Shown here: piece after piece, positions 12,257 to 34,349 of the stretch | Layout: each line of letters begins with the position of its first letter | How positions within the stretch are numbered: the first letter of the stretch is position 1 | Assembly: GCF_021028975.2 (NCBI RefSeq) | Contig: NC_059434.1 | Location: 68,758,001-68,822,000 of the forward strand | From: Sphaerodactylus townsendi | Lineage: Eukaryota | DNA length: 64,000 nucleotides | Reading direction: 5' to 3' | Program-made: the position numbers and the translations under genes | The notes under the pieces: model-generated | Database searches by the model: none | Seen by the model: the letters and a program-made list of their open reading frames with translations, nothing else | What the model was told of the DNA's origin: nothing

Positions 12257-13157
12257 ATACCATCATTGGTGTGACACTGGTTTTCCCTTGAGCAATTGTA
12301 ACACACAGGTACCCACCCAGCCTCCCTTTCTCTCTCTTCTTCCACCTGCCTTCCTCTCTCCAGAGCCTGAATGATAGCAAATGCCCCTTATGGCCAGAAT
12401 TTTTTTGTTAATTACATACAAAGGAATTACACATAATATTCTATCTTCCATCATCGTAACCTATCATTCTCTGAAGCACAACTGTTTCACTAGAGAAGTG
12501 AAAGGATATGATGAAAAGCTCAATGTGTCAGGTGGTTTATATACTAGACTCTTTTATCCCTGTGATTCAAAATTATGGCAAAATGGCAGTTTTTGTGGCT
12601 GGAATCCACCTCATGCTCAAGCCTTTTCATCCCATTTCAAACACTGCGTCAACAACCGGCCTTGGCAGCCTTGTAAATTGGTCCCATGTTGTACTATCAA
12701 TAAAGTTACTGAGTACACATGACAACAATATGAGAGCATGAGGCCCATAACATCTCACAAAACAAATGTTTATTACCACAAAAATCACATATATCTAGGC
12801 ATAGAAACTGTGCCTCCTGTTCGATGTAATTATTCCCTCACTAGCTGGGAAAAGAGGACACCATGAACATGGAAGCATCTTCTGGTCGCTGTAATTATTT
12901 TCTCCTGAAAATGCATTGTGAAAGTGCAGTTTTTAAGAAGAAGCGCATGCAAAATAAAAATAATTTCGATTATAGATTGCGTGGTAAGTAAATAAGCCGC
13001 GTTTACTCCAGTCACAGACAACTATTATGTGGTATAAATAAATTCTATTGCTCAAACAACTGTTTAAAACTCTAAGGCAATTCTGAAATCTGTCATAATA
13101 CCAACATCTGGGACATTTCTTTGTCTTGAATGGAGATGCGGCTAGCTTGTTCTAGAA

Positions 13158-13285
13158 CAGGGGTAGGGAACCTGCGGCTCTCCAGATGTTCAGGAACTAC
13201 AATTCCCACCAGCCCCTACCAGCATGGCCAATTGGCCATGCTGACGAGCTGATGGGGTGTAGTTCCTGAGCTGGAAACCACAGGT
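13158..13285. mobile_element. hAT-type MITE (CAGGGGTAGGGAACC...ACTACAATTCCC family) in the presumptive 3'UTR of the SLR gene
   Basis: Similar to 47142-47279 and to the TIR of 27101-28710. Confidence 0.7.
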
Positions 13286-13436
13286 CTGTTCTAGGCTCCT
13301 CAAATCACACCAATTAACATGGAGCACAAGACAGAAATGGTGGTTTCAAGTTACAACAATGTAGTAGTGAAAAAAACAGGAAAATGTATTTGGAGAGAAG
13401 GAACTTATCCTCTTGTTCTTAAGCAGTGCCAGTTTC

Positions 13437-13530
13437 TCAGGCTTGATTTCTGTTCCTGATGTTCTCTAGGAGATTCTGGGCCTCATGGAGTCCATGACCA
13501 GCAGCTACACTGAGAAGTTTTTCCACTTCC
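13437..13530 (-). CDS. SLR gene last coding exon (EVEKLLSVAAGHGLHEAQNLLENIRNRNQA*)
   Basis: gccttctag acceptor; TGA at 13439-13437; degenerate second Sel1 repeat with capping helix. Confidence 0.88.
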
Positions 13531-16500
13531 CTAGAAGGCAAGCCATGGTTAATACAGCATGGTCTACATATAAGGTGATACTGAGGTGGCAGGATGAGGT
13601 GATGCTGAGGAATGAGGTGATACTGAGGTGGTAAATAGACTGTGCTACTTTAGATTATAGGCGAGGGATTATATTTTTAAAAAATCATCATAATAATTTA
13701 TTCTAATTTTTATGCCAGTTCTCCAAACTGTTCACAATTATCCTTTTCAAACTCAGCCCCTTTCAAAAGTAGATTCCTGCTCTGAAACAACTCATGGCAG
13801 TTTATATGCTGTGAAGCATGTCATTAAAAAAATATACTTTGTGGATACATACATATAATAAACCCAATAATGGCTATTAGTCATTATAATTAAACCAAAC
13901 CTCCATGTTCAGAGGCAGTGTCTCTCTGAATACCAGTATTGGACACAATAATGGTAGCTATTGGCTTCTGTGTCTTGTTTATAGGCCTTACATGGCCACC
14001 GTGTAGAACAGGATGCTAAATTTGATGGACTGTTACTCTGATACAGCATGATTGCTCTTCTGATCTTATCCTCGCAACAACTCTTGAAAATGGCTTGAAA
14101 TCAGTCATTGAGTGCCACAGTTTAGCAAGAAGTGGGATCTATCATACCTATCTCATCTAACTCAAGACATTACATTATACTGGATCTCAACTCTCATATC
14201 CCCAGAGAAGCTCTTGCTATTTTCCTATTAAGTTTCAGTTTCCCTATAACTACCGTGTTTTCCCGAAAATAAGACAGTGTCTTATATTAATTTTTGCTCC
14301 CAAAGATGTGCTATGTCTTATTTTCAGAGGATGTCTTATTTTTCCGCTCCACAGCTGCATGCTCTGGTGTTCTGTTCGACAGGCATGCTTCCAAACAAAA
14401 ACTTTGCTACGTCTTACTTTTGGGGGATGTTTTATATTTAGCACTTCAGCAAAACCTCTACTACGTCTTATTCCCAGGGGATGTCTTATATTCGGGGAAA
14501 CAGGGTAGCATGGGTTTAGTTCCCTGTACAGTATTCTAAGGGAGGGAATTTTAGTCAGCTCCTGTCCCTTTAAGAAATTTCCCTAGAGGCAGTCTTCCTT
14601 AATTACCCAGCAACGCCTCTGTTTAGCTTAGTCAGTTTAAGGTGCCTAGGGAGTTGGAAGGCTGCAATATCTTTAACACCTATGGTGCATAGACTAAAGT
14701 GTATATAATCTAGAGAATGCAAAGTTAAGGTGTCGACAGAAAATAGAATCCAGACAAAAGACTGAAAGAACCAGGAGGAAGTATAGACAAGTGGACTTTC
14801 TTGAAAGGAGTCAAGAATAAAAGTCTACAGCTTCAAGTTTGTTCACCAATCAAGCAAGTTAGATCCTGGGAGGAGTTAGGATCTCATATCTTCTAAGCAA
14901 TAAACCTTGCTTTTGAACTGTTACACCTTGCTTGTGGGTCTCCCATCCTGTTACAGCCAAGAACAGGGCACCTTCATATTGTTTTACTTGGGGAACAGAA
15001 CATCAACTGCTGAGAGAAGAACTTCCACAGCAATCGAAACAACACAACTTACCCTTCTCCAAGATCCATCGTCATATTCTTCAGTTTTCCAACAGCCAAG
15101 TTAAAAGAGGAGTGAGGGTGGCCCTTCTCTGCCGCTTGACTGTGAGAGAAGAAAGGAAAAAATGCCAAATGAGCTCAATAGACAGAAGATGTAATCCATG
15201 CTCACACAGCCTATTACCTACCATGTCAAATGAAGTAACCATCCAAACAGAAAACACTTGGATGGTCACAATCTGTGACTGGTGGGATGCATTTGGCTTT
15301 GAAGTTTCTAAGATATATTGGTTTGATGTAAATAAACACAGATGCACACTGGAATACTGTTGGACTAAAACATTTGCTTTTCTCCTCACAGATATGACAC
15401 AGGTATAGTGACCAAGTAGGGATGCCAGATCCATAGCCACACACACCCCCGGGAGCTGTTTGGGGATGAGGCCTGGCACTTTGGCCATTTCTGCATGGGC
15501 CAAAAAAAGCTGGTAAAACGACAGTTAAAACAGCGTTATGGGTAGGGTGTTCGCACGGCTGCCACTGCAGAAACGACGCAACGATGCAGCAACGCTCCAG
15601 CGGCCCCACAATGGTGTATTCGAAAATCGCTCAACAAGTGAGCCTTTTCAACAATGGCGCTCCACAGCTGGTGTCGTGCAAAGTGCCCTCCAGGAATCAG
15701 TGCTGCAAAGCCCGTCCCCAACAATGGTGGTCCACACTGGTCAATCCTGGCACCAAACACCCATGACATCTACCCTGGGAAAAAAAGAACATAATTTGCA
15801 AAGCACAGCTGTGCGAAGGTCCGCAGTTCAACCAATGCACGACTTGTCCACGGAGTGCCCGCACATGTGAACACTCCGTTACGTTGCTGCAGTGTTGCCA
15901 ATAACACCGATGACACAATGCTGTAATTGGCTGTGCAGAAACGGCCTTTGACATCTCAATCCTTCACTATGCTCTAGGAATTTCTAAAACTCTATGATAA
16001 ATATCTTAACGATCTGGTCTGCTCCCAAAGCAGTGTGGGGGAACAACATCACTTCCAGGTCTTTACTACCACACACCATTCATGATGGGCAGAGGTTCTC
16101 TCACCAGTTGCAACCCTCTATCCTCGGTCATTAAGGAATGAGTACAGCCATTGTAAGAATGTCCCAGGGATTCCTTTAGTAAGTTCTATAGAAGGGCAAG
16201 GAGGAAAGGTGGTATGGTATAGCTTGATCTCATCAGATCTAAAAAGCTATGCATTGTCAGTACTTGGAAGAGAGACCTCCAAGGAAGGCAACAACAAATC
16301 ACCTGTCTCTAACTTGCCTTGAAAGCCCCTTGCTGAGGTCATCATAAGTCATCTGTGACTTGATGGCACTTTTCACACATGCACACACAGAAGGGCATGA
16401 AACAAAATCACAGGTAAAATTAATATTGCCCCTGCCTTACCTGAACCATTGCATAGCTTTTTCTTCATTCTTTTGCACCCCAGCTCCTGGTAATGAGACA

Positions 16501-19500
16501 AAGACTCATCAGTAAAGTTACTAACTATTTCTGACCTCTGCTTCTGTGCATAATAAAAGCTAGAACCATACCATGTCCCTTTAAGGGGTGGGGAGAGACT
16601 ACAAAGCAACAAATTCCACCCATCAACCCTGGGGCACCACTCAGGGATGCAGAGGCAGAGAGAAGAAGGGGCAGTATATTTCAAGGCATTTCCCTGATAA
16701 GGACTAGGAACTCAGCCAGGAGAGCATACACACCCTAGATTTCATGTTAGCTAACCAGTTACAGAGGGGCAGTAGAGGGAGAGAGGGTGCCATTTACCCC
16801 TCCCCTCTCAAGCTTGAGTCCTGTCAAGACCCCCACAAGAAGGGTCTGGAGAGTATGTTGATCTCCCCCACCCCCAATCCTGACAACATGACAAACTCTT
16901 ATTCACACTCCCCCAGAGGCATAGCAAGAGGGAAAAGAACCCAGTGCACTGGTGCGTCCTCCGCCCCCCCCCCCCGGAATGCCCCCCCCTGGAATGCCCT
17001 CGCCACACCCCCACAGGGGGCACGCCCGGTGCATCATGCCCTCCCCCGCGCCCTTGGAACTATGCCTCTGCACTCCCCAAATTCCAGCTTTTGAGGAACC
17101 TATGTAAACAGGAAGGCAGTTTACAATTGATCCCTGTCCAGATTTGTGCATATAGCATAGAAATTTGCACTAGCCTCACAAATTCATAACCTCACCGATA
17201 GCAGTTACACAAAAGTAGATGCTACAGTCATACACAACTGGATTGCTCCAAAGGCACTGAAAGCAACCAAGGGCAAGAAGATATTAGCTTACTTAGATTA
17301 GTCCTACCTGTTAAATATCTCTGTCCCACAATATGCTGGGCGTTGGGATATCCTAGGTGAGCATACATATGAGCCACATGGAAATGGAAGTTTTCGTAAC
17401 ATAGCAAGATGTAGAGCAGGAGAAAGACAGTGCCAAAAATAGTCAGCAACTGAAAGCAGAAAAACAAGAGTGGATATATCCCCGGCAGCAGCCTTCAGTC
17501 TTTGCAGAGGGACCCACATTTTAACTTTAATCTTTTCATTTTTGCATACATCCCACGTTTTCTTTGTTCTTCCATTCTCAATCCCAAAACTTTTAGTTTT
17601 TTGGGTCTTTTTTTCCTTTTCTTAAAAATGCAATGAAAAAAAGAGAATAGTAGAGGTGCCACTAATGTGAAATATCAAAGATGGATCCATGAGCCAGCTG
17701 TGGGTTCTGATCCAGGAACTGATGGCCAATAAAGATTGATCTACACTAGAAATGTGTATACATTAAATAGATTGTTTGCTGTGGCTTTCTCCAAGCAATG
17801 CTGGCACCTATAGTTTGCTGAAGTGCTAAGAGTTCTGTTAAAGATAATTTTCCTTTCCCTTCTCTCGGAATTAGATTTCTCGTGAGTCTTTGGAGAAAAC
17901 GAGCATTAACTTATCTGCAGTGTAGCAATGCTCTTAGAGTAGTGTAGAAGCCTGTCTCCCTCCTTTAGCTATCCTGCTGGCTTTTTCATATCCCACTGTT
18001 AGTAATGCCATTTTTCATTGGCTGAAACAGTTATCTAAGTCTTGGCAGTTTTCATTCGATATGTGCTTGTTAGTTCCTTGGAACTGAACATTTGAATTGA
18101 GAAATATGTCCTTATGCATGATTCGGATAACTTGCCAGCAGACTGTAGAGTTTAAGCAGAGTGAAAGGGGCTATTTCAGTCTCATGCAGTTTTGTATACA
18201 CATCTGTATCCAGGCCCACTATGCTACTGGATATCTCTTTTGAAGACGAAGAAGAGTTTAGATTATAACCCAGTTTCTCAACTATAGCAGCTTACAAACT
18301 CCTTTAGTCTCCCCACAACAGACCTGTTGTGAGGTAGGTGAGGCTGGGAAAGTTCTGAGAGAACTGTGGCAAGTTCAATGTCACCCAGCAGGCTTTATGA
18401 GTCGGAGCGGGGAAACATATCCAGTTCTCCAGATTAGAGTCCACTACACCACGCTTAACCACTACACCACACTTTTGATGCATATGGAAATATGTATCTC
18501 CATCCAAAACCATTAGTCCACAGTTCTGCAATTTTTTGCAGTTAAAGAGCTAAACTTCATCAAAATTCAGAGAATGAGACCAACAAAGAGTCATATAATA
18601 AGCCCATTTGCGCAACTGAAAATATACAGTTTAACACTACTGATAATTGGCAAGTTGGTTAATAATCCAAATTGTTTTCACAGTCCAAACATCACTTGTT
18701 GCAAGTCCTTTAATACAAGGCCTCCCAGTGAGTAAAAAAATGTATACAAGAGCATTCTATAGTAATTGTTTTAGAGTGCTGCTAGCATGAACCTATACAT
18801 TATTCACATTTGGATTACTGCAAATTTTCACTTTTCCTTTCTGTAATGGATAAAATGCCTTTTAGTCACATAAAGCCAGCGTGGTGCAGTGGTTAAGAGC
18901 AAGTGGATTCTAATCTGGAGAACTGGGTTTGATTCCTCACTCCTCCACCTGAGTGGCAGAGGCTTATCTGGTGAACCAGATGTGTTTCCACATGCCTACA
19001 TTCCTGCTGGGTGACCTTTGGCTTGTCACAGTTCTTTGGAACTCTCTCAGCCCCATCTACCTCACAAGGTGTCTGTTGTGGGGAGAAGAAGGTAAAGGAG
19101 TTTGTAAACCCCTTTGAGTCTCCTTACAGGAGAGAAGGTGGGATATAAATCCAAAATCTTCTTCTTCTAAAAATCTTTGCTTGCCATTCCCTTCACACAC
19201 TGATTATTCTAACATCCCTCCTACCCCTCCAATACAGTGTAAAGATTTGATATGGTTTCAAAGTAAGGAGAGTTGGATTTATATTCCCCCTTTCTCTCCT
19301 ATAGGAGACTCAGAGGGATTTACAAACTCCTTTCCCTTCCCCCCTCACAACAAACACTCTGTGAGGTAGGTGGGGCTGAGAGAGCTCAGAAGAACTGTGA
19401 CTAGCCCAACATCACCCAGCTGGCGTGTGTTGGAGTATACAGGCTAATCTGAATTCCCCAGATAAGCCTCCACAGCTCAGGCGGCAGAGCAGGGAATCAA

Positions 19501-22500
19501 ACCCGGTTCTTCCAGATTAGAGTACACCTGCTCTTAACCACTATGCCACTGCTGCTCCACATTTGGCTCTAGAGTCGTAGGTTGCAGACTCCTGCATTAG
19601 TCAATGAACACAGTTAGAGTTACTCTTTTCAGTTCATCATAAGTGAGCCACAACTTCTGCTACAGATTGGTATAGAACTCTGGTTATCATGGAGATCTGG
19701 TTTTAGAAAACAGTTTTCTAATATCCTTGGATCATGGAACAATAGGTGGATGCACACCTCTTTCCTGGACTGGGGAATTGCAATCTGTTTTTCTCTGTTT
19801 GATAAATAGACAGTCTAGACACCTTTTGCATAGGTCACACGGTGGGCCATCTTATCAGCCAACCTGCAGGCAGTGGCTGACAATTTATGCAAAGCAAACA
19901 ATATCAAACAGAAGGAATCTCTCTCTTCTACAATGGGCTCAAACATTCATCAAACAACCTCATAATCGATAAAGCCCTCCTGAGCCTTTTAACCTTGACA
20001 AATGGAGCTTTTATCCTACTACACATGGTTGTTGTTTTCAGAGGCAAGTCATTAGGGAGGAAAACGGATTACTCTGTTCCAAGCAATAGGTGCCATCTTC
20101 AACAATGCTTCAGAAAGTACTCTTGAAATGCTTTGTTATATGATGATTGGTTGCCCTCCTGATGTTGATTTTCCTCCTAAATTTCTTCGATACTTTTAAA
20201 TAAATCTGATTTGGGATGAGACATGCAGTTCACATGCAACTATCGTGTTTTTATTATTATTTTGCCATGAAGTCACATCCTGGGTTGGGGGAAGGTGGAC
20301 AGGGGATGGGATGGAATGTCACCCACCAAAGGACGAGGGTAGAGGGTTCATTGTCACAACATTCCATTGCTTAGGCAGTTATAGATTAGGACAGTTCAAT
20401 GCAATTGATAAGATGAGATGTCTAATAAACAGTGGCCCTTTATGCATGCAGTGCTTACCCTGTAGCCATCCTCTTCACAGTGAGTTTTTCCTGCATTTTT
20501 TGGTTTAAACAGGATTCTCCTGCTGCAAAACGTCCTTAGTCACACATTCTTTTTATGCAACCTCCAGCTGGGAAGGTTGCTCTCTGCTGCATTTGTGTGT
20601 GTGTGTCCTGACATCCTGGGTCTAGAGTTATTTTGCTAGACCATGTAAATTTCATGTAGATTTCACTGGTCTGTTGCTCCAGCAGTAGACCAGCAGTATT
20701 AAAGTATTTTTAATAAGCTGAATTGCTGCCCTGAAGAAGGTGAGGAACAGCTGTTGGGTGGGCAGGGGACAGAAGTGTAGCTGGGCCATACTGTGCCTGG
20801 CCCACTCTGTGTTTTCCGCCACCTACACACTTACCTTAGTTCAGCCTGAAAGTGCAGGCTAGAAAAAGCAGCCTGTTCACTTGAGACTGAAAATGGCCTG
20901 GTGGGAACTACATTTCCCAGGAGATCTTGGGGTTCGCAAGGTCTCCTGGGAAGTGTAGTTCCCACCTGGCAGGCCTGGAAACTCGAAGTGAACGAGGTTC
21001 TGAAACCTTGGCTCAACAGAATGTGAGTGGAGGAGGGGGCACCGTGGGGGGGGCAGGAGGGGATGCGCACCCCCATTCCCGGTAGCTCCACCTCTGGCAA
21101 GGAAAGGAGGGGAGGAGCAAGGAAACCCAATGTAAGCCAAACACATGCTGTCTCCATTTGCTTTCTCTGTGAAGTGAGAGGAAAAGTCACGCTTTCAGAG
21201 GTTTCAGAAACCAGGAGATTTTCTGATCTTAGGCTCATTCCGCACATGCAGAATAAGGCACTTTCAAACTGCTTTCAGTGCTCTTTGAAGCTGTCCGGAA
21301 TAGCAAAATCCACTTGCAAACAGTTGTGAAAGTGGTTTGAAAACGCATTATTTTGCGTGTGCGGAAGGGACCTTATGCATGGTGAGTTTGGGAGATGGGA
21401 AAACTTGTGTGATACAAAGAGTCCAACCCAAAGGGAATGTATGTTCAATGAGACGTAGACCACAGGTGCATAAATGGTCAAAGTAACAATACTGGGGAAA
21501 GCATGTGTCACTTCCGGCGTGACATCTTTTTTGGCTGAGCTTTATAATCTTGCGGGGTCTATTGCAGTGGCTGAGCAAGACAGGTCTGCGGCAGCAGTAA
21601 TGGCATTCAAGTCCTGCTTGTGGAGGCCAGCTCTTCCTTGCCAGATGTTTTGGGCAGTCACACAGCATGAGTGTCCCATGCACAGTGACCAAGTCTAATA
21701 GCAGCTGTGCCAAGGTCTCTTTCGGGGTTGCCTGAAAGTGAGGACCTCAAGTACGCTAACCTATGCCTTACTCTGCCGTCTTTCTTGCACTGGTGAATAG
21801 GGCATCTTTCAACACCAGGGACAATGGAACAGTCCATTTGCCTCATGATCTTGTGTGCCCAGTTTGGCTTGGTGGTTACAGGGCAGCTATTTCCTTGTGT
21901 GCCCAGTTGGCTTGGTGGCTACAGGGCAGCTCTGCAGTGCCTGAGGTACATATTCACCCTGCCTCTTCTTTCTCCTTTATTTATGGACAAAATATACATT
22001 TTGTCTTATCCTTGGGAGCATCCCTCTCTTGGCAGTATTCAAATGATGCCAGCCTGTTTCACACGTGACTGCTTTTCCTCGCTGAGCTTTTGAGAAGCTG
22101 ATAGGAATGCCTTCTGTGAATATGCAGTCGAATGTTCTGTAGTGGGTGTCCTGGTNNNNNNNNNNNNNNNNNNNNNNNNNNNNNNNNNNNNNNNNNNNNN
22201 NNNNNNNNNNNNNNNNNNNNNNNNNNNNNNNNNNNNNNNNNNNNNNNNNNNNNNNNNNNNNNNNNNNNNNNNNNNNNNNNNNNNNNNNNNNNNNNNNNNN
22301 NNNNNNNNNNNNNNNNNNNNNNNNNNNNNNNNNNNNNNNNNNNNNNNNNNNNNNNNNNNNNNNNNNNNNNNNNNNNNNNNNNNNNNNNNNNNNNNNNNNN
22401 NNNNNNNNNNNNNNNNNNNNNNNNNNNNNNNNNNNNNTAGTAGGATATTGGGTTAATATAACAGAGTTTGCCCAGTCTTGAAAGCATGATATTGAATGCA

Positions 22501-25500
22501 ACAAATCAGTCCTCCCAAGAAGTATATTGCAAAATGTAAAGCTTACGTTTATTTAAGTTCCAGTTGAATGATAGAAACCTAATTTAAAGGGTAGAATTGG
22601 TGAGTGCAATATGGGATATACCTGTAGAAATAGATATATACCTACAGAACATATGTGAAGAAACATCTGTCTCCATTGCCATCCATGTAGGAAGAGAGAA
22701 AGAACAATGGGTACTGAGAGAGAAAGAGGAAAGGTCAGAGGACAGCTCCCACGTAAAGAGGAAGGGTCAGAGGACAGCTCCCACGTAAAGAGAGGGGCAT
22801 CCCTTTCAACACTTATACACACCTGGAGTGATTTAGCACCCCCACCCCGACCACCACCATGTCCAGGCAAGCTGAATGTCTCGCTCCAATATAACCTCCC
22901 TTGTACTTGAACTCTTGGCTATTTTCTGCCAAATATGCTGTAGAAGCATCTGGCTTGAGTGGCCATGCTTCCTTCCCTGAAAGCAGGCATATCAAAAGGC
23001 ATGACTGCATGAAGGAATTTAAACTCCTATCTGCAAAGCTTCCTGGAGAATGATAGTAATGGTGCTCCTGGGCACAGCATATAATAAAGGGAAACTGGGT
23101 TACCTTTGTTCCTTCCTATGCTTGGGGACAGGGTGACATCCGGCAAGCAAATACTACTGTACCAGTAAATATTCAAGGTTTAGGATTGAGCTGCCAATCA
23201 CAAAGTATTGACCTCAAACGCACAAAGACACCAGAAGCATACTGTTTATGGACTGCAATGAATTAACTAGGGTGCTGACTGACTGGGAAATATGGCTTCT
23301 CGTTGCTCTTGTGTTTTCAGAAACACATTGATCTACAGAAAGCAGGTAAAGTTTTCTACAGCCTGAATGTAAACATTGTTCCTTGCTAATGTTAAGTTGC
23401 AATTAAAGGCGCCGATAGAGCGGGCTGATGAAAAGATGAGAAGCTGGCCACCTGAGTTCAGTCAACATGTTTCAAAACAAAATGCTAAGAATTGTAACAA
23501 AGGTATGCCAGTTACTGTGCTGCCATGGATATTTTAATACTCTGCTGCTTCAGTGCTCCATGCCAATGTGTTAGATGCCTTGCGGGCAAATAGAGGATCT
23601 ATCAACACGACAGAAAGCAAACAAACACCCCCAATTCCCAGCTCTAGCAACTCACCTCCCATTTACTCCACTCAGAAGGAGGTTTCTTGCCCCTCTGGGA
23701 TATATTTGTCTCCCAGATCTTAGCAGGAGGACATGCTTGGCTCCTTCCCATTTGTTTCCGTTGTACCATGACCAGTTTCGTGTCCCTCCTTGTTCTCTTC
23801 AGCAAGCTTTTTATTCCTGTGAAGCACACCCGCTTTATTCTCTTCCTCTAACTCCCATTCACATTTTATCCAATCCCCAAGCGTTTCTTTTGTTTGCAGT
23901 CCCTGACATTTTTTTCTGTCTCTGATTTATAGGCAGCGAGAAGCAGCTCTGCTGTGCATGGTAGCACAGAGCAAAGACCGTGCTTTTCCTCTGGTTAGTT
24001 TCATCACTTTTTTTTTTTGGCACGGCTTCGGTGGTTGAATTGCTTGATAGACATAATTTCAATGGGGCACAGTGTTGCGTAGAAGTGATGGGGGAAACCC
24101 AGCAGCTCTGGCAAAAAGACGCGAGAGAAGGAGCAACTCTGTTTTCCAATCCAGCTTAGCATCCATTTAATCATTTTAACATTGAACCTATGGCTAAGTT
24201 AGTAAACTATATTACATCGAACCAAAATAACTATTAGTTGGCAGGGAAGAGCAAAGAAAAGAGATGCAACAGGAGCAGCAGTGGCGTAGGAGGTTAAGAG
24301 CTCGTGTATCTAATCTGGACGAACCGGGTTTGATTCCCTGCTCTGCCGCCTGAGCTGTGGAGGCTTATCTGGGGAATTCAGATTAGCCTGTACACTCCCA
24401 CACGCCAGCTGGGTGACCTTGGGCTAGTCACAGCTTCTCGGAGCTCTCTCAGCCCCACCTACCTCACAGGGTGTTTGTTGTGAGGGGGGAAGGGCAAGGA
24501 GATTGTAAGCCCCTTTGAGTCTCCTGCAGGAGAGAAAGGGGGGATATAAATCCAAACTCTTCTTCTTCTCTTCTATATAGTTACAGCTTTATGCTGAACG
24601 ATCCAAAATCAAGATTTTAGATCAAAGTTGCTTCCATACAAAGCTCTTCCCCTGTATTCCCACCCACCCAATTGCAGCACTTCTGAATGGGGCTCCTGCA
24701 CAACATTTTCCCCACATCCAAATTTTAAGCTTTCCTCACCAGGATTGCAGACTTCAAAAACCACATTTGTGAAAGATCTTACCCAAAAGTGTGGGTGGGA
24801 ATGTGTGGATTTCAGTGCCTCTCTGCTCACCTCTGGCACCAAGACGCCACCATTTCCTCTTGTGCCTCTTATTCCCTCCCTGTTTCCTAACATTAAAGCT
24901 CTATTTCTACTACCTTTTTAAAAAAGCTAACAGCCCAGAGGAGGTGAGAGATACAGAAATGATGGGCATGAGGGAAACAATGGCCCTTTCCACACAACCG
25001 AAATAAAACATTTTGAGGCAACTAATAAAATGTTTTCCCCTAACAATTCTTTTTCTGAAAACTTTTTGAAATGTTTTCACTTGCTGTGCATAAGTCCTGA
25101 AGACATTTCCCACGCCTCCCATACTTTTTCCTGAGCACCATTTTCTGAGCTCACGCCAGCCATCTCATGCTGTCAGGTGTTTTTTTTAATTGGGGGTGGT
25201 CATGACTGTAGCTCCGAAGACATGACCCCTAGAGAATTGGAGCATGAGGCTTTGAACCTTCATAGCACTGGATCCACAGATCTTTAAAAAAAAAAAACAA
25301 CCCTGGCATAATCACAAAATGGTAGCCAGGAATTGTTTTGGGGGAATGAGTGGAACAAACTGGGGAGGGAGGGGGGATTGAAAATGTTTTGCAAACACTT
25401 TCAACACATTTTGCAAGCATTTTCAATGACTTGTGCAGAAATGGTCCGTGTGTTCATTTTACAAGCTTCCTACTTGGGATCTTTTAGCAGTTAAGAAAAA

Positions 25501-28500
25501 GGATTTGTAATAACACTACGCAAATTTGCTAAAGAACAGAGAACAACCTCCTCAAACAAGACCAAAATTCAAGAATTCCAGAAACTAGCAGGGACTGACT
25601 TGCTGAAATAAATGTCCCTAGTCTTTAAGGTGCTACCGGACTTCTCTTTTGTTTTACTGGGGAATCAGCCTGTAATCCACCAGTCTAGCCTCTGCTAGTG
25701 CTTCAAGTCAGAATTCATTAAAGATCACCTCTCTATTTTTGCACTATGCTGCCACCACATGGTCAAATCATTTTTAAGGACACACTTCTAGATTAAATTG
25801 TCTTCCCAAAAATCTCATCCTCTAAGAAGTTCAAGTGCTGCACTAAAAGTGCCAGCTGGGCTAGAGAATAATATCCTCCTGACCCTTTAATAGAAGTTTA
25901 ATGGAATGTTATTTGTCAAGTGCTGTTATCATCTCTACACCATGAAAAGCTTCAGAGATCAATTTCCAAGCATTAAAGCTTCTATTAAGGAGAAACATTT
26001 AAAGGGTCATTTGCAAGAATAGGATCTGTTACTACCACGACTTATCTTCAGGTAAGCATTTTGCCTGATGACCTGATCATTGTTAGATTTTCCATTCAGA
26101 ATATGGCACTGTGTTAAGTGGTATGTGCAACCACACTTTTAATTCTGTTTGCAGTTCATGCACAAAGGGTCACCAGTTGGCTTGAAAAATAAAGTTCTGT
26201 CTCTTTAATAGCAGCTTTCTAATAGCGGAAAGTAGCTGTTGAAGCTTTTCATGGGCATGGGCTTAAATAACATCCCTTTAAGGAGGAGGAGGAGGAGAAG
26301 AGTTTAGGGAGAAGAAGAAGAATTTGGATGTATACCCTTCTTTTCTCAGCCATAAGGAGTCTCAAAGCACCTTACAAACTCCTTCCCTTCCTCTCCCCAC
26401 AACAGATACCTTGTGAGGTAGAGCAAGCCACAGAGAGAGAACTGTGGCTAGCTCAGTGTCACCCAGCAGGCTTCATGTGTAGAAGCAAGGTAACAAATCC
26501 AGTTCACCAGATTAGAATCTACCTGCTCTTTACCACTATACCATTATGGCTCTCTCTACTTGTAGGTTAATAAGGAGGAACTGTTGGAAACAATAAATGT
26601 TTTCCACTGTGCATAAATGGTTACCAAGCCAAGTTAACAAAACTGGAGGGTGCAATACAGAACTCCCAACACATTCATAACTGGAAAAAAATAATTTGAC
26701 TGTTTCACTAGGTTTCATCGTACCAAGATGATTGGCAGGATATATCGTATTCCAAGATAGCTATAAACCAGCATTGACGGTCAATCAAGATGTAAACAGG
26801 TTTCATTGCATTTGAGACTAACTGCAAAAATAGCTGTATATAGGTTTGTAGCATAAATTTTGTAAATTAAGCTAATACAGGCTAGTAGTAGGTCCCTAGA
26901 TAGGCAGGGAGAAATAGATCGATTTGTAGTCCTCCTGTTGTTGCAGAAACTTAGCCCATTCATGCAGAGGCGGAGCTACAAGGGGACTAGGGGTGCACAT
27001 TGCGCGAGGCGTGCCCTGAGGGGCAACAAAATTTCAAGGTTTGGTATTTTTTAGTGTTTTTCAGTTTTTGGCCTGCAGGGGGCGCAGTTTTAGGCTAGCA
27101 CAGGGGTACGGAATCTGCGGCTCTTATGCCCTTGCACTGCGGCTCCATGAGCTGAGCCGCTGGCCCCATCCTTGCGCGCCCTGCAGGCAGCAGGGCAGGC
27201 GCACCAACTGCCCGTGGCCGGCTGGGCCGTGCTGTGGGCTTCCCCTCTCGCCTGCCCCGTTCAGGGAAACGAGCCGCTGGCCCCATCCTTGCCCGCCCTG
27301 CAGGCAGCAGAGCGGACGCATCCATGCGCTTCTCAGAATGAGCGGAGTAAAAGGTAAAAAAGTGTTATCTTTATTTTAAATGTCAAAAAAATTATTTGCG
27401 GCTCCAAATGTTTTCTTTTCCCATGGAAAGCGGGTCCAAATGGCTCTTTTGAGTGTTAAAAGGTGTTGGTGTGCTAACCTTCCAAGGCCTTCTTGGCGAC
27501 CTGGGACCTCCGTACCCTCGCGGGGACCGATCTTACCCCCCCCCCATATGTTCCGGGCAGGCCTCTGCGCTCTCAGCAGGGGCCAACTTACCTAGTGATT
27601 CCCAGCCTGAGTGTCACGGCTGGCAGCCTCCCACCGGGCCAGAGCCTTTAGCTCTGGCCCTGCCCACCGGCAGGCAGCTCTTCCATCAGCCAGCCGGGCC
27701 CTGCCGGGGATCTTGCTGAGTCTCGCGAGGGCCTGTAAGTTGAGCTGTTCCACCGGGCCTTTGGGGAGACCAGCTGTTGATAGGGGCCCCCTTCCTCCTT
27801 CTTCCTTCCTCCTCTTTTTTTCTCCATTCTGACATCATGGAGATCCTGCCACCCTTTTTTTTGTTTGGGGTTATGGCAAATTAGTAGAGCCGCCATCCTG
27901 AGTTAATTAATGCTGCATTTTAAATGGGGAAGGGTTTATTTTTATTCTTATTAGAGCTGTTTTAACTTATATTTATCGTATTTAAAATGTTATTGTGCTC
28001 TATCCATGTTGTACACCGCCCTGAGCCCTTTGGGGAGGGCGGTTTATAAACTAAATAATAAATAAATAAAATAACAAATAAAAGGTGTTGGTGTTAACCT
28101 TCCAAGGCCTTCTTGGCGACCTGGGACCTCCGTACCCTCGCGGGGACGATCTTACCCCCCCCCCATATGTTCCGGCCAGGCCTCTGCGCTCTCAGCAGAG
28201 GCCAACTTACCTGGTGATTCCCAGCCCCGAGTGATACGGGTTAGCCTTCCACCCGGCCAGAGCCTTACAGCTCTGCCCCTGCCTGGTGTGAAATCTTCCA
28301 TCAGTTGTCCGGGCCCTATGATCTTGCTGAGTCTCGCGAGGGTCTGTAAGACTGAGCTGTCCCACCGGGCCTTTGACGAGACTAGCTGTTGATAGGGGCC
28401 CCCTTCCTCCTTCTTCCTTCCTCCTCTTTTTTTCTCCATACTGACATCATGGAGATCCTGCCACCCCTTTTGTTTGGGGTTATGGGAATTAGTAGAGGCC

Positions 28501-30103
28501 GCCATCCTGAGTTAATTAATGCTGCATTTTAAATGGGGAAGGGTTTATTTTTATTCTTATTAGAGCTGTTTTAACTTATATTTATCGTATTTAAAATGTT
28601 ATTGTGCTCTATCCATGTTGTACACCGCCCTGAGCCCTTTGGGGGAGGGCGGTTTATAAACCCAAATAATAAATAAATAAAAATAAATAAATAAAGGTTC
28701 CCTACCCCTGGGCTAGCAGAACCAAAATTTCAGGGAGTTTTCGAGGGACTATCCTGATGATACCGCCCAAGTTAGGTGAGGTTTGGTTCAGGGGGGTCCA
28801 AAGTTATGGACTCCCAAAGGGAGCTAGTAGGAGATGGGGGCTACACCTTTGAGAGTCCATAACTTTGGACCCCCTGAACCAAACTTCACCAAACCTGGCT
28901 GGTATCATCAGGATAGTCTCCTAAAGATACCCTGAAATTTTGATGCTGCTAGCCTAAAAACTGCACTCCTTGCAGGCTGAAAACTGAAAAAACACTAAAA
29001 ATACAAAAAACACAAATGAACGGGGGGGCAGATTTTGCACTGGGCTCCATTTTCCCTAGCTACACCTCGGCATTCATGCCCCTCAAAAATGGTGGTGATG
29101 AGATAATGCCATTATTATATCTGCATTGTTTTTCTTCTCCCTAACCTAAATTCAGAGGCGCGTGTTGGATATACTGCTAGTTTTTCCACCCAGCTTGTTT
29201 CAGTGTACAGCCCATTTGCATCCCCTTCATTCACTGGTGGTGCGTGGAAACTCACCCATTCACTCAGGAGAGAGAAACATTTGTATTCTGTTGTAGTTGA
29301 ACTTGAAGGGAGACATTTCTGAAGAGAAAAGAAAATGAGAAATGGATTATAGACCAGTGAGGTGAGGAAAGAGGGGTGTAGTAAGGTGCAAAAATAGAAG
29401 CTGTATATAGAGATGTGAAGTGATGGACGAAGATGCAAAGAGAATGTTGAAGGTGTCAGAAGAATGCATGGACTAGAGATGAACAGAGAAACAAGAGATA
29501 TGGTTGACAAATAAGGCTATGGCAAGAATCAAAGTATGGACAATGGATGTGTAGCATCATAATAAATGCTCTTATTGCAATAAGTATTAACTTAGTAAAC
29601 TTTTAGGAGCTCAAGATAATGACTAACAGAGCAATGCAACCCTTCAGTGAGAAAAAGATATATAATTAGTGATTTGGGTTGTATTACAGTGGTGGGATTC
29701 AAATAATTTAACAACCGGTTCCAGTGGTGGGATTCAAATAATTTAACAACTGGTTGTTTACAAGCAGCATTTTAACAACCGGTTCTGCCGAAGTGGTGCG
29801 AACCTGCTGAATCCCACCACTGGTTGTATACCAGAGTGTGTGGTATGATCAATAAGTTACTCTTTCCTACTGATAGCAAACTCAAGGTCCTTGGTGCAGT
29901 CTGAAATTCATATATACCATGTCCCTGTAGGACAGAAGTTGGGGTAAAGTCTTCAGTGTGTTGAGGGAAGGAAAGACTCCAATAATTGTCCTTGACATAG
30001 TTGAGCATAGTTCCACTGATTTTTACAGACCATTTTCCGGCTTTGTGGCTGCCTTCATCCTCAGCAATGTAAATGTGTGTGCAATTGCAGTCTCTTTTTT
30101 CAT
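13437..30103 (-). CDS. Uncharacterised Sel1-like-repeat (SLR) single-pass membrane protein, 200 aa, 6 coding exons: 30103-30031, 23816-23656, 17449-17308, 16486-16441, 15139-15053, 13530-13437
   Basis: All five introns are GT-AG with matching phases (1,0,1,2,2); the CDS totals 603 nt. Protein: MKKETAIAHTFTLLRMKAATKPENGIKSLLKRTRRDTKLVMVQRKQMGRSQACPPAKIWETNISQRGKKPPSEWSKWELLTIFGTVFLLLYILLCYENFHFHVAHMYAHLGYPNAQHIVGQRYLTGAGVQKNEEKAMQWFSQAAEKGHPHSSFNLAVGKLKNMTMDLGEGEVEKLLSVAAGHGLHEAQNLLENIRNRNQA*. AQHIVGQRYLTGAGVQKNEEKAMQWFSQAAEKGH fits the Sel1 consensus. The start codon and first exon are the least certain part. Confidence 0.85.
14253..14505. mobile_element. Tc1/mariner-pogo type MITE
   Basis: TA-flanked TIR CCGTGTTT..CCGAAAATAAGACA; near-identical copy at 30869-31119. 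Confidence 0.85.
15053..15139 (-). CDS. SLR gene exon (QAAEKGHPHSSFNLAVGKLKNMTMDLGE-G)
   Basis: ttctctcacag acceptor, GG|gtaagt donor, 87 nt. Confidence 0.9.
16441..16486 (-). CDS. SLR gene exon (GAGVQKNEEKAMQWF-S)
   Basis: taccag acceptor, AG|gtaagg donor, 46 nt; core of the Sel1 repeat. Confidence 0.9.
16914..17070. mobile_element. hAT-type MITE
   Basis: TIR CAGAGGCATAG / CTATGCCTCTG; perfect 8-bp TSD CACTCCCC. Confidence 0.88.
17308..17449 (-). CDS. SLR gene exon: TM helix and start of Sel1 repeat (LLTIFGTVFLLLYILLCYENFHFHVAHMYAHLGYPNAQHIVGQRYLT)
   Basis: ctttcag acceptor, G|gtagg donor, 142 nt. Confidence 0.9.
18245..18470 (-). mobile_element. Squam3-type tRNA SINE
   Basis: Homologous to 24272-24575; (GAA)n tail seen on the + strand. 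Confidence 0.75.
18873..19168 (+). mobile_element. Squam3-type tRNA SINE
   Basis: A/B boxes TGGTGCAGTGG and GGTTTGATTCC; L2-like tail; (TTC)n. Confidence 0.85.
19262..19558 (-). mobile_element. Squam3-type tRNA SINE
   Basis: Full-length, closely similar to 24272-24575. Confidence 0.85.
21232..21372. mobile_element. PIF/Harbinger-type MITE; second copy at about 30710-30858
   Basis: TIR ..TTCCGCACATGCAGAATAA; 3-bp TTA duplication. Confidence 0.75.
22156..22437. other. Assembly gap (282 N) inside an intron of the SLR gene
   Basis: Run of N. Confidence 1.
23656..23816 (-). CDS. SLR gene exon (GIKSLLKR...SEWSKWE)
   Basis: cttcacag acceptor, GAG|gtgag donor, 161 nt; lies within ORF 23644..23829. 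Confidence 0.8.
24272..24575 (+). mobile_element. Full-length young Squam3-type (gecko Squam3C-like) SINE
   Basis: GGAGCAGCAGTGGCGTAGGAGGTTAAGAGC head, B box GGTTTGATTCC, CpGs retained, tail ATAAATCCAAACTC(TTC)n. Confidence 0.88.
26310..26550 (-). mobile_element. Squam3-type SINE
   Basis: Homology to the other copies. Confidence 0.75.
27101..28710. mobile_element. Second hAT element nested in the first
   Basis: TIRs CAGGGGTACGGAA / TTCCCTACCCCTG; perfect TSD GGCTAGCA. Confidence 0.85.
27459..28697 (+). mobile_element. Two tandem 5'-truncated L2 LINE copies (about 620 bp each) with (AAAT)n tails, nested in the second hAT element
   Basis: RAFS...RAL...RACK L2 C-terminal motif; CGCCCTGAGCCCTTTGGGGAGGGCGG stem-loop; AAAGGT at all three junctions. 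Confidence 0.85.
29687..29822. mobile_element. hAT-type MITE, same family as 976-1111 in the opposite orientation
   Basis: TIR CAGTGGTGGGATTC; imperfect GTTGTAT(T)A duplication. Confidence 0.85.
30031..30103 (-). CDS. SLR gene, putative first coding exon (MKKETAIAHTFTLLRMKAATKPEN-G); acceptor gives exon start 30169 and the frame is open upstream of the ATG
   Basis: ggattcag acceptor; G|gtctgt phase-1 donor matches the phase-1 acceptor of the next exon. Confidence 0.6.
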
Positions 30104-30868
30104 TATACGGTACTCTTGGGGAATATCCTCTTGGTTCTGCTGCAATTCTGATGCAGCTTTAATTGGAATCTGAATCCAGTGAGAAAAATTAACATAAGAG
30201 AGTGAGAAGCATTGTCTGTAGAATAAAGGCCCAGGCTCAGACCAAGATTCAAGGGGGAGAGAGGTGTCAACTCAAGCTAAAAGGAAAAAAGAATGGTGGG
30301 TAGGGTTAAAACTGCCTAGGGGCAATGATGAAACTGCCTGGGGCCATTAGCAAGATAATTTCAAGCGTTCATATACCCAGCTGTGGGCAGTCAACCCTTT
30401 CTTATTAAGAAAGATAATGGAGGATAACACCCATTGCTTGATCTTTAAAAAGCATCTGCCTTAATTCTCAATTTGATCAAACAGCTTGTAATTTCTCAGT
30501 GCACTAAAGAAAGGCAAAAGAAAGGCAGTGCACAAAAGAAAGGTCATCTCAATGCCTTCTAAGATTCAAGGACTTGGCCTTAGTATTTGAAAGCAAAAGT
30601 AGGTGAAAGACCATCAACTGCATCAAGATAGTACTTTCCTGTGTCATAGTTGTGAACAGGTGTCAAGCCATTAACAGAAATACTGAATGGACAATTTGCT
30701 TGCTGGTTGAGTTTCCGCACATGCAGAATAATGCACTTTCAATCCACTTTCACAATTGTTTGCAAGCGGATTTTGCTATTCCGCACAGTAAAACCCAGCT
30801 GCAAAGTGAATTAAAAGTGGATTGAAAGTGCATTATTCTGCATGTGCAGAAGGGGCCTTTGATACCTA

Positions 30869-31119
30869 CCGTGTTTCCCCGAAAATAATACAGTGTCTTA
30901 TATTAATTTTTGCTCCCAAAGATGTGCTATGTCTTATTTTCAGGGAATGTCTTATTTTTCCGCTCCACAGCTGCATGCTCTGGTGTTCTGTTCAACAGGC
31001 ATGCTTCCCAACAAAAACTTTGCTATGTCTTACTTTTGGGGGATGTTTTATATTTAGCACTTCAGCAAAACCTCTACTACATCTTATTCTCAGGGAATGT
31101 CTTATATTCAGGGAAACGG
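30869..31119. mobile_element. Tc1/mariner-pogo type MITE
   Basis: TA flanks; copy of 14253-14505. Confidence 0.85.
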
Positions 31120-31864: not shown

Positions 31865-32108
31865 TGCAAAACTAAGGGTGTTTTAGCGGATTTGCTTTCA
31901 AAATGTGTAGAAAACTAGGAGCATTTCAGCGAATTTGCTTTCAAAATGTGTGTTTTAAGCAGATTTGATTTCAAAATGTGTACAAAAATTTGCTTTAAAA
32001 TGTGTATTTATAGCAGATTTGCTTTAAAATGTGTGTAAAGCGGATTTGCTTTAAAAATGTGTGCAAAACTAAGGGTATTTTAGCGGATTTGCTTTAAAAA
32101 TGTGTGTA
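31865..32108. repeat. Irregular tandem array of 7 copies of (GCGG)ATTTGCTTT(C)AAAATGTGT next to the H2AZ1 CpG island
   Basis: Copies at about 31887, 31930, 31960, 31988, 32013, 32040, 32083; linker AAAACTAAGGGT.TTTTA occurs three times. Confidence 0.9.
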
Positions 32109-32149
32109 TTGGGGATGAAATGCTTAAGCTCCGTTCTCTGTTATTTTCT

Positions 32150-33120
32150 GCTCAAATTGAGTCTGCGCGGTTTTTTATTAAGAAACCCAAAATTATTTGG
32201 AGACGGACATTCCATCTGCATTTGTTGATTCGCGACGGATACGGCTCCCATAATGGAGACAAGAGACTAAATGTTGGAATCAGGTCCGGCCGCCCCACGA
32301 GGGGCACGCCCAGTCAAAAATTCGCCTCATGCTGATGAGGCGAGGCTTTAACCGTAGGCGGGACTCCAGAAGGCCGACCAGCAACGCTTCTCCGGGGACA
32401 ACGGAGTCCTCCCCCACCCTGTTCCTGATTGGCCCAATAGGAAGCCAGAGATACCCCCCCCCCCTTCGCTGCGATAGGCTCGCTCGGCGAATCTTGTCCC
32501 CCGGATGTGTGTACGTTAGAACTGGTATAAAAGGTTCCTGAAAGGGCGGGAGCGGAGGCAGTTTTGAATTGCGACGGGGTAAGAAGGAGAGAAGAGGCCC
32601 GTCTTCTGTGGCTTCCCATCTACAAACCGCCTCCCTCCGTAACGACAAGCTCTTCTTCGTAATGGTAAGCAGCTCTCCTGTTGTCTATGGATCGGAGGCA
32701 AGCGTTGAGGAGGAAGGGATGAGCGGCAACGAGGCAATACTTTGTGGAGAACGTTAAAATTACTTATAGAATAGCAAAGAAAGAAGATAAAGCTGAACTG
32801 GAAGGGCGCGGTCAGACTACCGCTATTGCCTGTCGGCGAGCATACCTTCTACGCATGCGCTTTCATAGTGATACCGGGCGCATGCGCTAAGAACGGGAAG
32901 GTGCGGGAGGGGAACTGTGCAGGCATGGTTTTATGTGCGCATGCGTGGACCTTTGTTCTGGCCTCTAAAATGTACATGATGCTTGGGGATGCGAGATGCT
33001 CACTTGCTGCTTTCTTTCCTCTTCGCGTTAGGCTGGGGGCAAAGCCGGGAAGGACTCTGGCAAGACCAAAACTAAGACGGTGTCTCGTTCGCAGAGAGCT
33101 GGCTTACAGGTGAGCATGTG
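32150..33120. promoter_or_regulatory. CpG-island promoter of H2AZ1, probably bidirectional: back-to-back CCAAT boxes (ATTGG 32428-32432, CCAAT 32434-32438), TATAAAA 32526-32532, GC box, TSS near 32558, three NRF1-type GCGCATGCG sites in intron 1
   Basis: High CpG density; motifs read directly; TATA lies about 30 bp before gcagttttgaatt. Confidence 0.85.
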
Positions 33121-34349
33121 GGAGAGGTTCGGGTGGGCCCTTGTTTTTCAGATTTTGTCCTTTCCCTGTTCTGGACGGTGGGCCATTGTGGGCTACAAAA
33201 TGCGACTATGGCTAGTGGTTGCCGCACCACCTACATGTGTTGCATATTTACCTTATAGTTGTATTCCGAAAATTCCCATTTGAAACTTCCTGTTTCAAGA
33301 ATGCTGTGGAAAGTAGAAGCTGAAACTAAAGTTGGCTTGTCCTTGCATTGTAACGATTTCTTCTTCGTGTACAGTTCCCTGTTGGTCGCATTCATCGGCA
33401 TTTAAAGTCAAGGACTACAAGTCATGGACGAGTTGGGGCTACAGCTGCTGTATACAGTGCTGCAATCCTGGAATACCTTACAGCTGAGGTAAGAGCCACT
33501 TCATTTTTATGTATTTATTTCATTTGATAGTTCGCCCTTTGCCATATAGGCGCAGGGCAGTTGACAACAATAAAATTACTTAATTGTATCCTGGCACCAT
33601 AATCTCTACTAAGGAATAAAAATTAAGATTTGAACTCTACCCCTTAAAACAAACATTCACACTAATATGAAGGAAAAGGATGGGGAGGCCAGTACAGGAA
33701 TACCATTGTTGTCTTTGACCCGCTCTGTCTTACAGGCCCCGAGAAATTGTGTCAAGTTTTGCAGGGCCAGGGTATTTTGCCTCTGCTGTTCTCTGTGATG
33801 CCAGAGTTGTGGGAGGCTGTGATTGTGTTGAAACAAGCAGCCAGAAATGATTTGCAGAACTAATCAGAATGTCCATTAATAATAGGAAACTGGTATCTCA
33901 ACAGCTGGTTCATTCTGGTAACTAAAAGCTAGTCAAAGTAATGGTGCATCTCTTTTGAAAACAGTATTTGGTATGTTTGAAGAAATGCTCCCCAACTTAC
34001 AGTAAAATTTTCATTGCAGGTACTTGAGTTAGCAGGAAATGCATCCAAAGACTTGAAAGTGAAGCGAATTACACCCCGTCACTTGCAGCTTGCAATCCGA
34101 GGAGATGAAGAACTTGATTCTCTCATCAAGGCAACAATTGCTGGTGGAGGTATGTATCCACTTGAATAATACAAAGTCTCTTGTCATTGTACAGTAGAGT
34201 AGCTTTATTCTAATGTGATAAAAAATATGGACTGTTAATGATTTTTCATTTCAAAAAATTGATGTAACTTTTTTCTTGCTGCCTTAGGTGTAATTCCACA
34301 TATCCATAAATCTCTCATTGGAAAGAAAGGGCAACAGAAAACGGTTTAA
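32662..34349 (+). CDS. H2AZ1: Histone H2A.Z.1, 128 aa; exons 32662-32664, 33032-33109, 33375-33488, 34020-34149, 34288-34349
   Basis: Spliced CDS of 387 nt: [129 protein letters not shown]14, S38 and V127 are diagnostic of isoform Z.1. ATG-only first coding exon; adjacent to DNAJB14 as in other vertebrates. Confidence 0.98.
33032..33109 (+). CDS. H2AZ1: H2AZ1 exon 2
   Basis: ttag|GCT...CAG|gtgagc, [11 protein letters not shown]...RAGLQ. Confidence 0.97.
33375..33488 (+). CDS. H2AZ1: H2AZ1 exon 3
   Basis: acag|TTC...GAG|gtaaga, FPVGRIHRH...EYLTAE. Confidence 0.97.
34020..34149 (+). CDS. H2AZ1: H2AZ1 exon 4
   Basis: gcag|GTA...G|gtatgt, VLELAGN...TIAGG. Confidence 0.97.
34288..34349 (+). CDS. 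H2AZ1: H2AZ1 exon 5 (coding part)
   Basis: ttag|GT GTA...[26 protein letters not shown]. Confidence 0.97.

Follow-up and report, generated by a model that had tools for sequence, protein, structure and literature searches.

We analysed a 64,000-nucleotide stretch of the Sphaerodactylus townsendi genome (NCBI RefSeq assembly GCF_021028975.2, contig NC_059434.1, positions 68,758,001 to 68,822,000 of the forward strand), referred to here as the window. On its minus strand, five coding exons running from position 23769 down to 13437 are joined in phase via canonical splice sites into a coding sequence of ~160 amino acids, divergent from the neighbouring gene H2AZ1. The best reading of this locus, which we consider highly probable, is a gecko-type ortholog of the bilaterian Seldom family, represented in Ciona by KH.C4.78. 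A preliminary description of the same DNA had proposed six exons, a 200-aa protein and an undescribed system. The features on which the two gene models differ or agree are the following, with slashes marking exon borders here and below.

30031..30103, minus strand: exon 1 of the preliminary description (ATG...AATG/GTCTGT); coding status unsupported
23770..23816, minus strand: upstream part of the first coding exon, with ACG at 23781-23779 where relatives have the start ATG
23656..23769, minus strand: first coding exon, with ATG at 23769-23767, 38 codons for the basic, putatively cytosolic tail MVQRKQMGRSQ...SKWE, and donor GTGAGT at 23655
22156..22437, no strand: assembly gap, the only N run, inside the intron 23656/17449 and 1.2 kb from the nearer exon
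17308..17449, minus strand: transmembrane-helix exon, with helix LLTIFGTVFLLLYILLC, FHFHV juxtamembrane motif and helix A of Sel1 repeat 1
16441..16486, minus strand: 46-nt exon, loop and helix B of Sel1 repeat 1 (AGVQKNEEKAMQWF)
15053..15139, minus strand: exon with the end of repeat 1, helix A of repeat 2 and an N-M-T sequon
13437..13530, minus strand: last coding exon, with helix B of repeat 2, capping helix and stop TGA at 13439-13437
12361..13436, minus strand: probable 3' untranslated region (UTR), with 72-79% identity to the two gecko loci across 0.5-0.8 kb

Gene model and conservation

All eight splice sites around the four coding introns are canonical (23656 GAG/gtgagt; 16486 accag/GA and 16441 CAG/gtaagg; 15139 cacag/T and 15053 AGG/gtaagt; 13530 tctag/G ... 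TGA), and the coding exons contain no stop or frameshift. The transmembrane-helix exon enters in phase 0 and leaves in phase 1, with borders tttcag/ ... /gtagga. The same layout of five coding exons is present in the Pogona, Heteronotia and Paroedura loci.

Comparisons were made exon by exon and via database orthologs. Relative to the RefSeq models of two geckos (Heteronotia and Paroedura), amino-acid identity per exon ranges from 76 to 100%. More specifically, the first coding exon (23656-23769) is 76-79% identical, ungapped, to the gecko orthologs and 46% identical to residues 19-65 of the Pogona protein P0002, and the transmembrane-helix exon reaches 91-96% with the geckos. The 46-nt exon matches Pogona in 13 of 14 residues and Heteronotia completely (100%); exon 15053-15139 is 86% identical to Pogona, and the last coding exon is 81% identical to Pogona and 93% to Heteronotia. 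Over the gecko loci, introns are ~70-80% and exons ~80-100% alike to the window.

The ratio of non-synonymous to synonymous substitution rates (dN/dS), a check that the preliminary description had itself proposed, was counted codon by codon inside each exon, with the exons left unjoined. Heteronotia gave 0.19 at a dS of 0.28 and Paroedura 0.20 at a dS of 0.40, with no gaps, stops or frameshifts. No exon is a repeated sequence within the window. Judged from sequence, exons 3-6 of the preliminary description together with the 3' two thirds of its exon 2 are conserved far beyond chance, and the locus is a real gene under purifying selection whose closest relatives are in geckos. The stretch 12361-13436 is probably the 3' UTR; a polyadenylation signal (PAS) scan found a single AATAAA in it, at 12774, 662 nt beyond the stop.

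The assembly gap falls within the first coding intron, which is 6.2 kb long here and 3.2-4.7 kb in the geckos. Its flanks are collinear with the Paroedura intron and in the same orientation (window 23227-23083 and 22142-21933 against L003 10442-10579 and 11124-11334), and in ortholog proteins the membrane helix follows '...SKWE' with no residues in between. Because of this collinearity and of the continuity of the proteins across the junction, the gap touches no coding sequence.

Start codon and 5' end

The six segments of the preliminary description (minus strand, 30103-30031, 23816-23656, 17449-17308, 16486-16441, 15139-15053 and 13530-13437) do exist and join: their lengths of 73, 161, 142, 46, 87 and 94 nt add up to 603 nt, that is 200 codons plus stop, and the split codons, checked by hand, encode Gly, Gly, Ser and Gly (G/GA, AG/T, GG/G). 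The upper coordinate of 30169 was misplaced, the ATG being at 30103. What finds no support is exon 1, together with the initial 47 nt of 'exon 2'.

Orthologs of geckos, turtles, crocodilians and birds begin 'MK[SP]...MVQRK', and the ATG that starts them is ACG in the window (23781-23779). The next in-frame ATG (23769), four codons downstream of the ACG, is kept in both geckos and in ostrich. In Pogona the entire N-terminal tail, including its ATG, is encoded in the exon homologous to 'exon 2'; the window has ATA in place of that ATG (23838-23836), with indels of 1 nt and 11 nt after it. In two samples of the same species, contigs match the window exactly over the first coding exon and confirm the letters of both the ACG and the CAG acceptor upstream of it. 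Among the differences listed for two related organisms, one lies in the first coding exon (23703 T>C, Ile to Val) and none at 23781-23779. Since the relatives' start ATG is ACG here, the product is probably 4 aa shorter (160 vs 164 aa). Starting at ATG 23769, translation of the five coding exons would yield ~160 aa, and the tail would measure 38 aa where the preliminary description had a Lys/Arg-rich N-terminus of 78 aa. Initiation at the ACG itself is a less likely alternative.

That the longer model is nonetheless right, with a coding exon at 30103-30031 spliced to 23816 and a 78-aa basic N-terminus on a 200-aa protein, seems to us unlikely. The 200-aa ORF (open reading frame) is open and in phase with AG and GT at its borders (30031 AATG/gtctgt; 23816 cacag/GA), the CAG acceptor is borne out by further DNA from this species, and an upstream start could compensate for the canonical ATG that is lost here. 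However, exon 1 has no match in the Pogona protein or DNA, and its alignment to Paroedura is no better than background, with AGG for the ATG and with indels (24, 8 and 2 nt). The proposed acceptor CAG (23819-23817) is CTG in Heteronotia and Paroedura, the proposed donor is weak (GTCTGT), and the tract before the acceptor is purine-rich. Gecko, turtle, crocodilian and bird orthologs always start within 'exon 2', and in 6 kb of repeat-rich DNA an in-phase ATG...GT easily arises by chance. The loss of the ancestral start (ATG to ACG), confirmed in independent DNA contigs, could also mark a gene that is decaying or a non-functional relic in this species, and lineage losses may have happened elsewhere, as the Seldom family was not found in human or mouse and no teleost stands among its matches. 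This we regard as very improbable: the in-frame ATG four codons after the ACG is conserved, stops and frameshifts are absent, eight splice sites are canonical, dN/dS is 0.19-0.20, and the change listed for the two related organisms in the first coding exon is single and conservative (Ile to Val).

The sequence evidence does not support exon 1 and the long N-terminus, and both should be dropped; 23770-23816, held to be coding in the preliminary description, is more likely 5' UTR. The gene model is accordingly corrected from 200 aa and six coding exons to ~160 aa and five. The transcription start probably lies farther 5', in a non-coding first exon; the H2AZ1 CpG island, used in ostrich, may be the site.

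Architecture of the predicted protein

From N- to C-terminus, the predicted protein comprises a 38-aa Lys/Arg-rich tail, one strongly hydrophobic helix, a linker-less FHFHV helix, two Sel1-like helix pairs and a capping helix. The preliminary description had placed the hydrophobic helix, the His-rich stretch and the Sel1-type sequence correctly. Its one canonical and one degenerate Sel1-like repeat (SLR) are likewise borne out, by Pfam Sel1 matches to orthologs and by an AlphaFold model with two helix pairs and caps. The Pfam check suggested there (Sel1, PF08238) was applied to orthologs, six of eight scoring 35.8-45.2 bits against a cut-off of 30.7 (Pogona 43), with goose (28.6 bits) and octopus (23.1 bits) below it. 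Single window exons gave no Pfam matches because the repeat is split over three exons; across the repeat these exons are 86-100% identical to the gecko and Pogona orthologs.

The AlphaFold model of the gecko ortholog P0079 has a mean predicted local distance difference test (pLDDT) score of 84, exceeding 90 over residues 41-160, with residues 1-39 disordered. Its membrane helix (40-58) passes almost directly into the FHFHV helix (60-73), which is followed by the pairs 77-89/97-109 and 113-124/133-145 and by the cap 149-160, making six helices after the membrane helix. The model fits the Sel1 fold, a right-handed superhelix of antiparallel helix pairs. Foldseek with this model returned only SLR and tetratricopeptide repeat (TPR) folds; the top 20 matches are all SLR proteins, with a root-mean-square deviation of 1.3-2.7 over 85-103 columns. 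Compared with solved SLR structures, a 43-sequence family profile matched an Oxalobacter SLR protein (best E, 5.8e-59), EsiB/c5321 (8.5e-52), SEL1L (~1e-25) and DELE1 (1.8e-11).

Beyond the repeat consensus, the residues H64, H66, Y71, Q80, H81, Q85, R86, M101, H112, S116 and N118 are invariant or nearly so and specific to the family. Invariant residues across the Seldom family include H64, Y71, G75, A79, Q80, G84, R86, Y87 and L88 (gecko numbering).

Family membership and distribution

Searching with the 47-aa exon 3 (17308-17449) alone, phmmer retrieved 66 family clusters at E <=1e-3 among 1.84 billion representatives, and 110 family matches carry names and taxa. One of the proteins retrieved by this exon is the Ciona protein P0042 (E 2.4e-06), which is nearly identical to the KH.C4.78 protein in the S1 File of PMC10962819. 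KH.C4.78 (Cirobu.g00006902) has been named Seldom (bioRxiv 10.1101/2024.01.15.575616) and is a Pou4-dependent neuronal gene of unknown function (PMC10962819; bioRxiv 10.1101/2024.01.15.575616); the preliminary description had said the same of the function of the present gene. Later papers use the Seldom promoter only.

The architecture of the Seldom family (tail, single helix, H-F-H, AQHxVGQRYL repeat, ~160-220 aa) is found in the predicted protein. Exon structure in Pogona and the two geckos, and the neighbourhood in Pogona, Paroedura and ostrich, point to orthology, as distinct from mere similarity of repeats.

Predicted members (RefSeq/UniProt) occur in sauropsids (Crotalus, Anolis, Podarcis, Varanus, geckos, turtles, crocodilians and many birds) and in mammals (cow LOC511175, pig, camel, deer, koala, platypus, elephant, sloth, manatee, carnivores, squirrels and gelada). 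Further predictions come from caecilians, frogs, lungfish, bichir, sawshark, Ciona, Styela, two tubeworms (annelids) and octopus. The gene had been assigned to non-mammalian vertebrates, a range that proves too narrow given the predicted orthologs in many mammals and in tunicates, annelids and octopus. The family matches include no entry from a teleost, mouse or human, and the literature on Ciona KH.C4.78 reports no mouse or human ortholog. Its absence from matches in these two best-studied mammals is probably why the family has no known function.

Members carry the automatic names 'EsiB-like', 'YbeT-like', 'DELE1-like' (lungfish), 'SEL1L2' and 'uncharacterized LOC'; all but the last of these names are misleading. 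The literature under the RefSeq names (LOC511175, EsiB-like, YbeT-like) held nothing relevant on the family. The gene was not undescribed, with RefSeq predictions in close relatives and a Ciona ortholog published as Seldom. The family had thus been predicted and named already, and we read the locus as an ortholog within it and not as a hidden new system. The anonymous tetrapod 'EsiB-like', 'YbeT-like' and 'LOC' predictions are now tied to Ciona Seldom, the sole member with an experimental record. The family can be summarized as one of small, strongly conserved, putative type II membrane proteins with two Sel1-like repeats, bilaterian in distribution and paired with H2AZ1 in sauropsids.

Topology and proposed mechanism

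In the 69 members that are reasonably complete, Lys and Arg together average 2.2 in the 15 residues preceding the helix and 0.5 after it. An N-x-T sequon lies in the exposed loop of repeat 2 in 50 of the 69, including nearly all well-predicted vertebrates. A C-terminal CxxxxC was found in eight of eight full-length tunicate, annelid and metagenome-derived members scored, as well as in the shorter octopus protein. Because of this charge bias, the sequon and the CxxxxC motif, we favour a type II orientation as the probable one, in which the tail is cytosolic and the repeats are not. Such an orientation agrees with the extracellular repeat predicted by the Ciona authors. The helix would then serve as a signal anchor and keep the repeat domain pressed to the outer or luminal membrane face, the basic tail remaining cytosolic.

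The main rival for the topology places the domain in the mitochondrial intermembrane space, the basic N-terminus acting as presequence and the helix as stop-transfer anchor; its His-rich interface might then bind metal or haem. Other eukaryotic SLR proteins (COA7, DELE1) reside in mitochondria, and both turned up in the structural and sequence comparisons; the tails of vertebrate members are rich in Arg and Lys and poor in acidic residues, and the membrane-adjacent histidines are conserved. Invertebrate tails, on the other hand, contain acidic residues alongside the basic ones (Ridgeia 14+/13-, Styela 15+/11-), unlike presequences, and the helix is very hydrophobic, like the signal anchors of the endoplasmic reticulum (ER). 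With the N-x-T sequon retained in nearly all well-predicted vertebrate members and the Ciona authors predicting an extracellular repeat, we judge a mitochondrial location improbable.

Sel1-like repeats are binding modules without catalytic residues, as established for SEL1L/Hrd3, Hcp proteins and others. Like other SLR domains, the protein would work by binding and not by catalysis. As there is no linker between helix and repeats, the domain would have to sit on the membrane surface, and a domain held there would most likely act by binding the membrane-proximal part of another membrane protein. The likely binding surface would be formed by the invariant polar residues H64, H66, Q80, H81, Q85, R86, H112, S116 and N118 (gecko numbering). 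A role as accessory subunit or chaperone binding another membrane protein is therefore one we put forward tentatively, by analogy, as a possibility short of even odds. By analogy with Ciona, expression might be expected in Pou4-type neurons.

A broader proposal, which we offer as speculation with little probability attached, is that in Pou4-type sensory neurons Seldom belongs to a membrane complex as an ancient accessory subunit or chaperone. The linker-less anchor would hold it flat on the outer or luminal membrane face, and the invariant His/Gln/Arg surface would do the binding. On this view it has been kept from annelids to many mammals, and H2AZ1-DT, a divergent transcript at the human H2AZ1 promoter, could be its remnant. 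The H2AZ1-DT literature held nothing on the origin of H2AZ1-DT.

Several points weigh against the interpretation as a whole. No RNA run was found to contain this stretch; the transcript, its junctions, its start and its expression in this species are predictions, and with the relatives' start codon reading ACG here the true start is one that we infer. The Pfam and fold evidence comes from orthologs, the separate pieces of the window having no Pfam match. The proposed topology is derived from charge bias and motifs, and the Asn of the sequon coincides with a common Sel1 consensus residue. The adaptor role is deduced, and the expression in Ciona may not carry over to vertebrates.

Neighbourhood, non-coding and repeat sequences

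The surroundings of the gene contain the following further features.

32001..33000, no strand: CpG island upstream of H2AZ1, observed/expected CpG 0.91-0.99; candidate shared bidirectional promoter
33038..34331, plus strand: H2AZ1 coding exons, from a local peptide scan; divergent neighbour
36500-37500: second CpG island, GC up to 0.72
~48080-48250, plus strand: J-domain exon, DNAJB14-type, downstream of H2AZ1, order as in ostrich

The head-to-head arrangement with H2AZ1 given in the preliminary description is confirmed, the two genes being divergent in the window, Pogona, Paroedura and ostrich. In Pogona and Paroedura, a gene for a 128-aa H2A lies divergently, 6.5-6.9 kb from the first coding exon of the ortholog. 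The ostrich order is DNAJB14, H2A.Z, ortholog, and the range of the ortholog overlaps the 5' end of H2A.Z. The first coding exon of ostrich isoform X2 is Arg-rich, lies inside the H2A.Z CpG island (L005 10001-10081) and is joined directly to the membrane-helix exon; since this isoform skips the usual tail exon, the cytosolic tail appears replaceable. No ostrich-like coding exon was found in the H2AZ1 CpG island of the window, where the sole minus-strand GTRAG donor, at 33003, has no ORF. A promoter shared with H2AZ1 is plausible.

Within intron 1, a block at 19557-20277 (minus strand) is 77-79% identical to both gecko loci. Its core at 19845-20025 is still 70% identical to Pogona, and the block is as conserved as the exons. 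We take the block to be non-coding because its indels are not multiples of three, and it is a candidate intronic enhancer. The geckos share TTTGCATAAATTG in the block, which resembles a POU/octamer site; Pogona has changes there.

Summed contig depth reaches 1e5-1e7 at 24100-24700, 26300-26700 and 26900-27500 in all four DNA runs, with many joints. These deep stretches are high-copy interspersed repeats that fill the interval between the gene and H2AZ1. An element of ~93 nt occurs in two copies, at 14251-14343 and 30867-30959, each 79% identical to Pogona L001 7620-7713, and is probably an old dispersed repeat common to squamates.

Comparison with known systems

The nearest described models are those of geckos, both of 164 aa: the 'sel1-repeat-containing protein YbeT-like' of Heteronotia binoei and LOC143819910 of Paroedura picta. 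Both share the five coding exons with the window, and Paroedura also shares the H2AZ1 neighbour. Ciona Seldom, ~37% identical to the squamate orthologs over its full length, has in common with them the cytosolic tail, the one membrane helix, the H-F-H motif, the AQHxVGQRYL Sel1 repeat and the degenerate second repeat. Tunicate, annelid and octopus proteins end in CxxxxC and have no N-x-T sequon, whereas vertebrates show the reverse. Pou4-dependent neuronal expression is established for Ciona alone.

The best matches in both sequence and fold are bacterial SLR proteins (EsiB/c5321, YbeT/YbeQ, HcpC, LpnE, LceB and Oxalobacter SLRs), which is why the animal genes were automatically named 'EsiB-like' or 'YbeT-like'. 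The bacterial proteins differ in being secreted or periplasmic, with many repeats and no membrane helix, and the IgA binding of EsiB is not implied for the animal family. The window holds a spliced animal gene with conserved synteny that shares only the repeat with EsiB and YbeT and does not belong to their type. Introns, conserved synteny and bilaterian distribution indicate an animal family and not contamination. The mitochondrial proteins DELE1 and COA7 share the repeat fold, and DELE1 aligns over both repeats (E 1.8e-11); they differ in their N-terminal region, in having no membrane anchor followed by an FHFHV motif, and in repeat number.

SEL1L/Hrd3, the adaptor of HRD1 in ER-associated degradation (ERAD), likewise presents a membrane-anchored, luminal SLR domain, and the repeats align at E ~1e-25. 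SEL1L, of ~790 aa, combines a signal peptide and an FN2 domain with 11-12 repeats and a C-terminal anchor, and adaptors of this type are marked by ~11 repeats grouped in three clusters. Outside the repeats there is no similarity; the window protein is predicted to have two repeats, an N-terminal anchor and ~160 aa and thus lacks the features of SEL1L/Hrd3. SEL1L/Hrd3 serves here as a model for the repeat domain as adaptor of a membrane complex.

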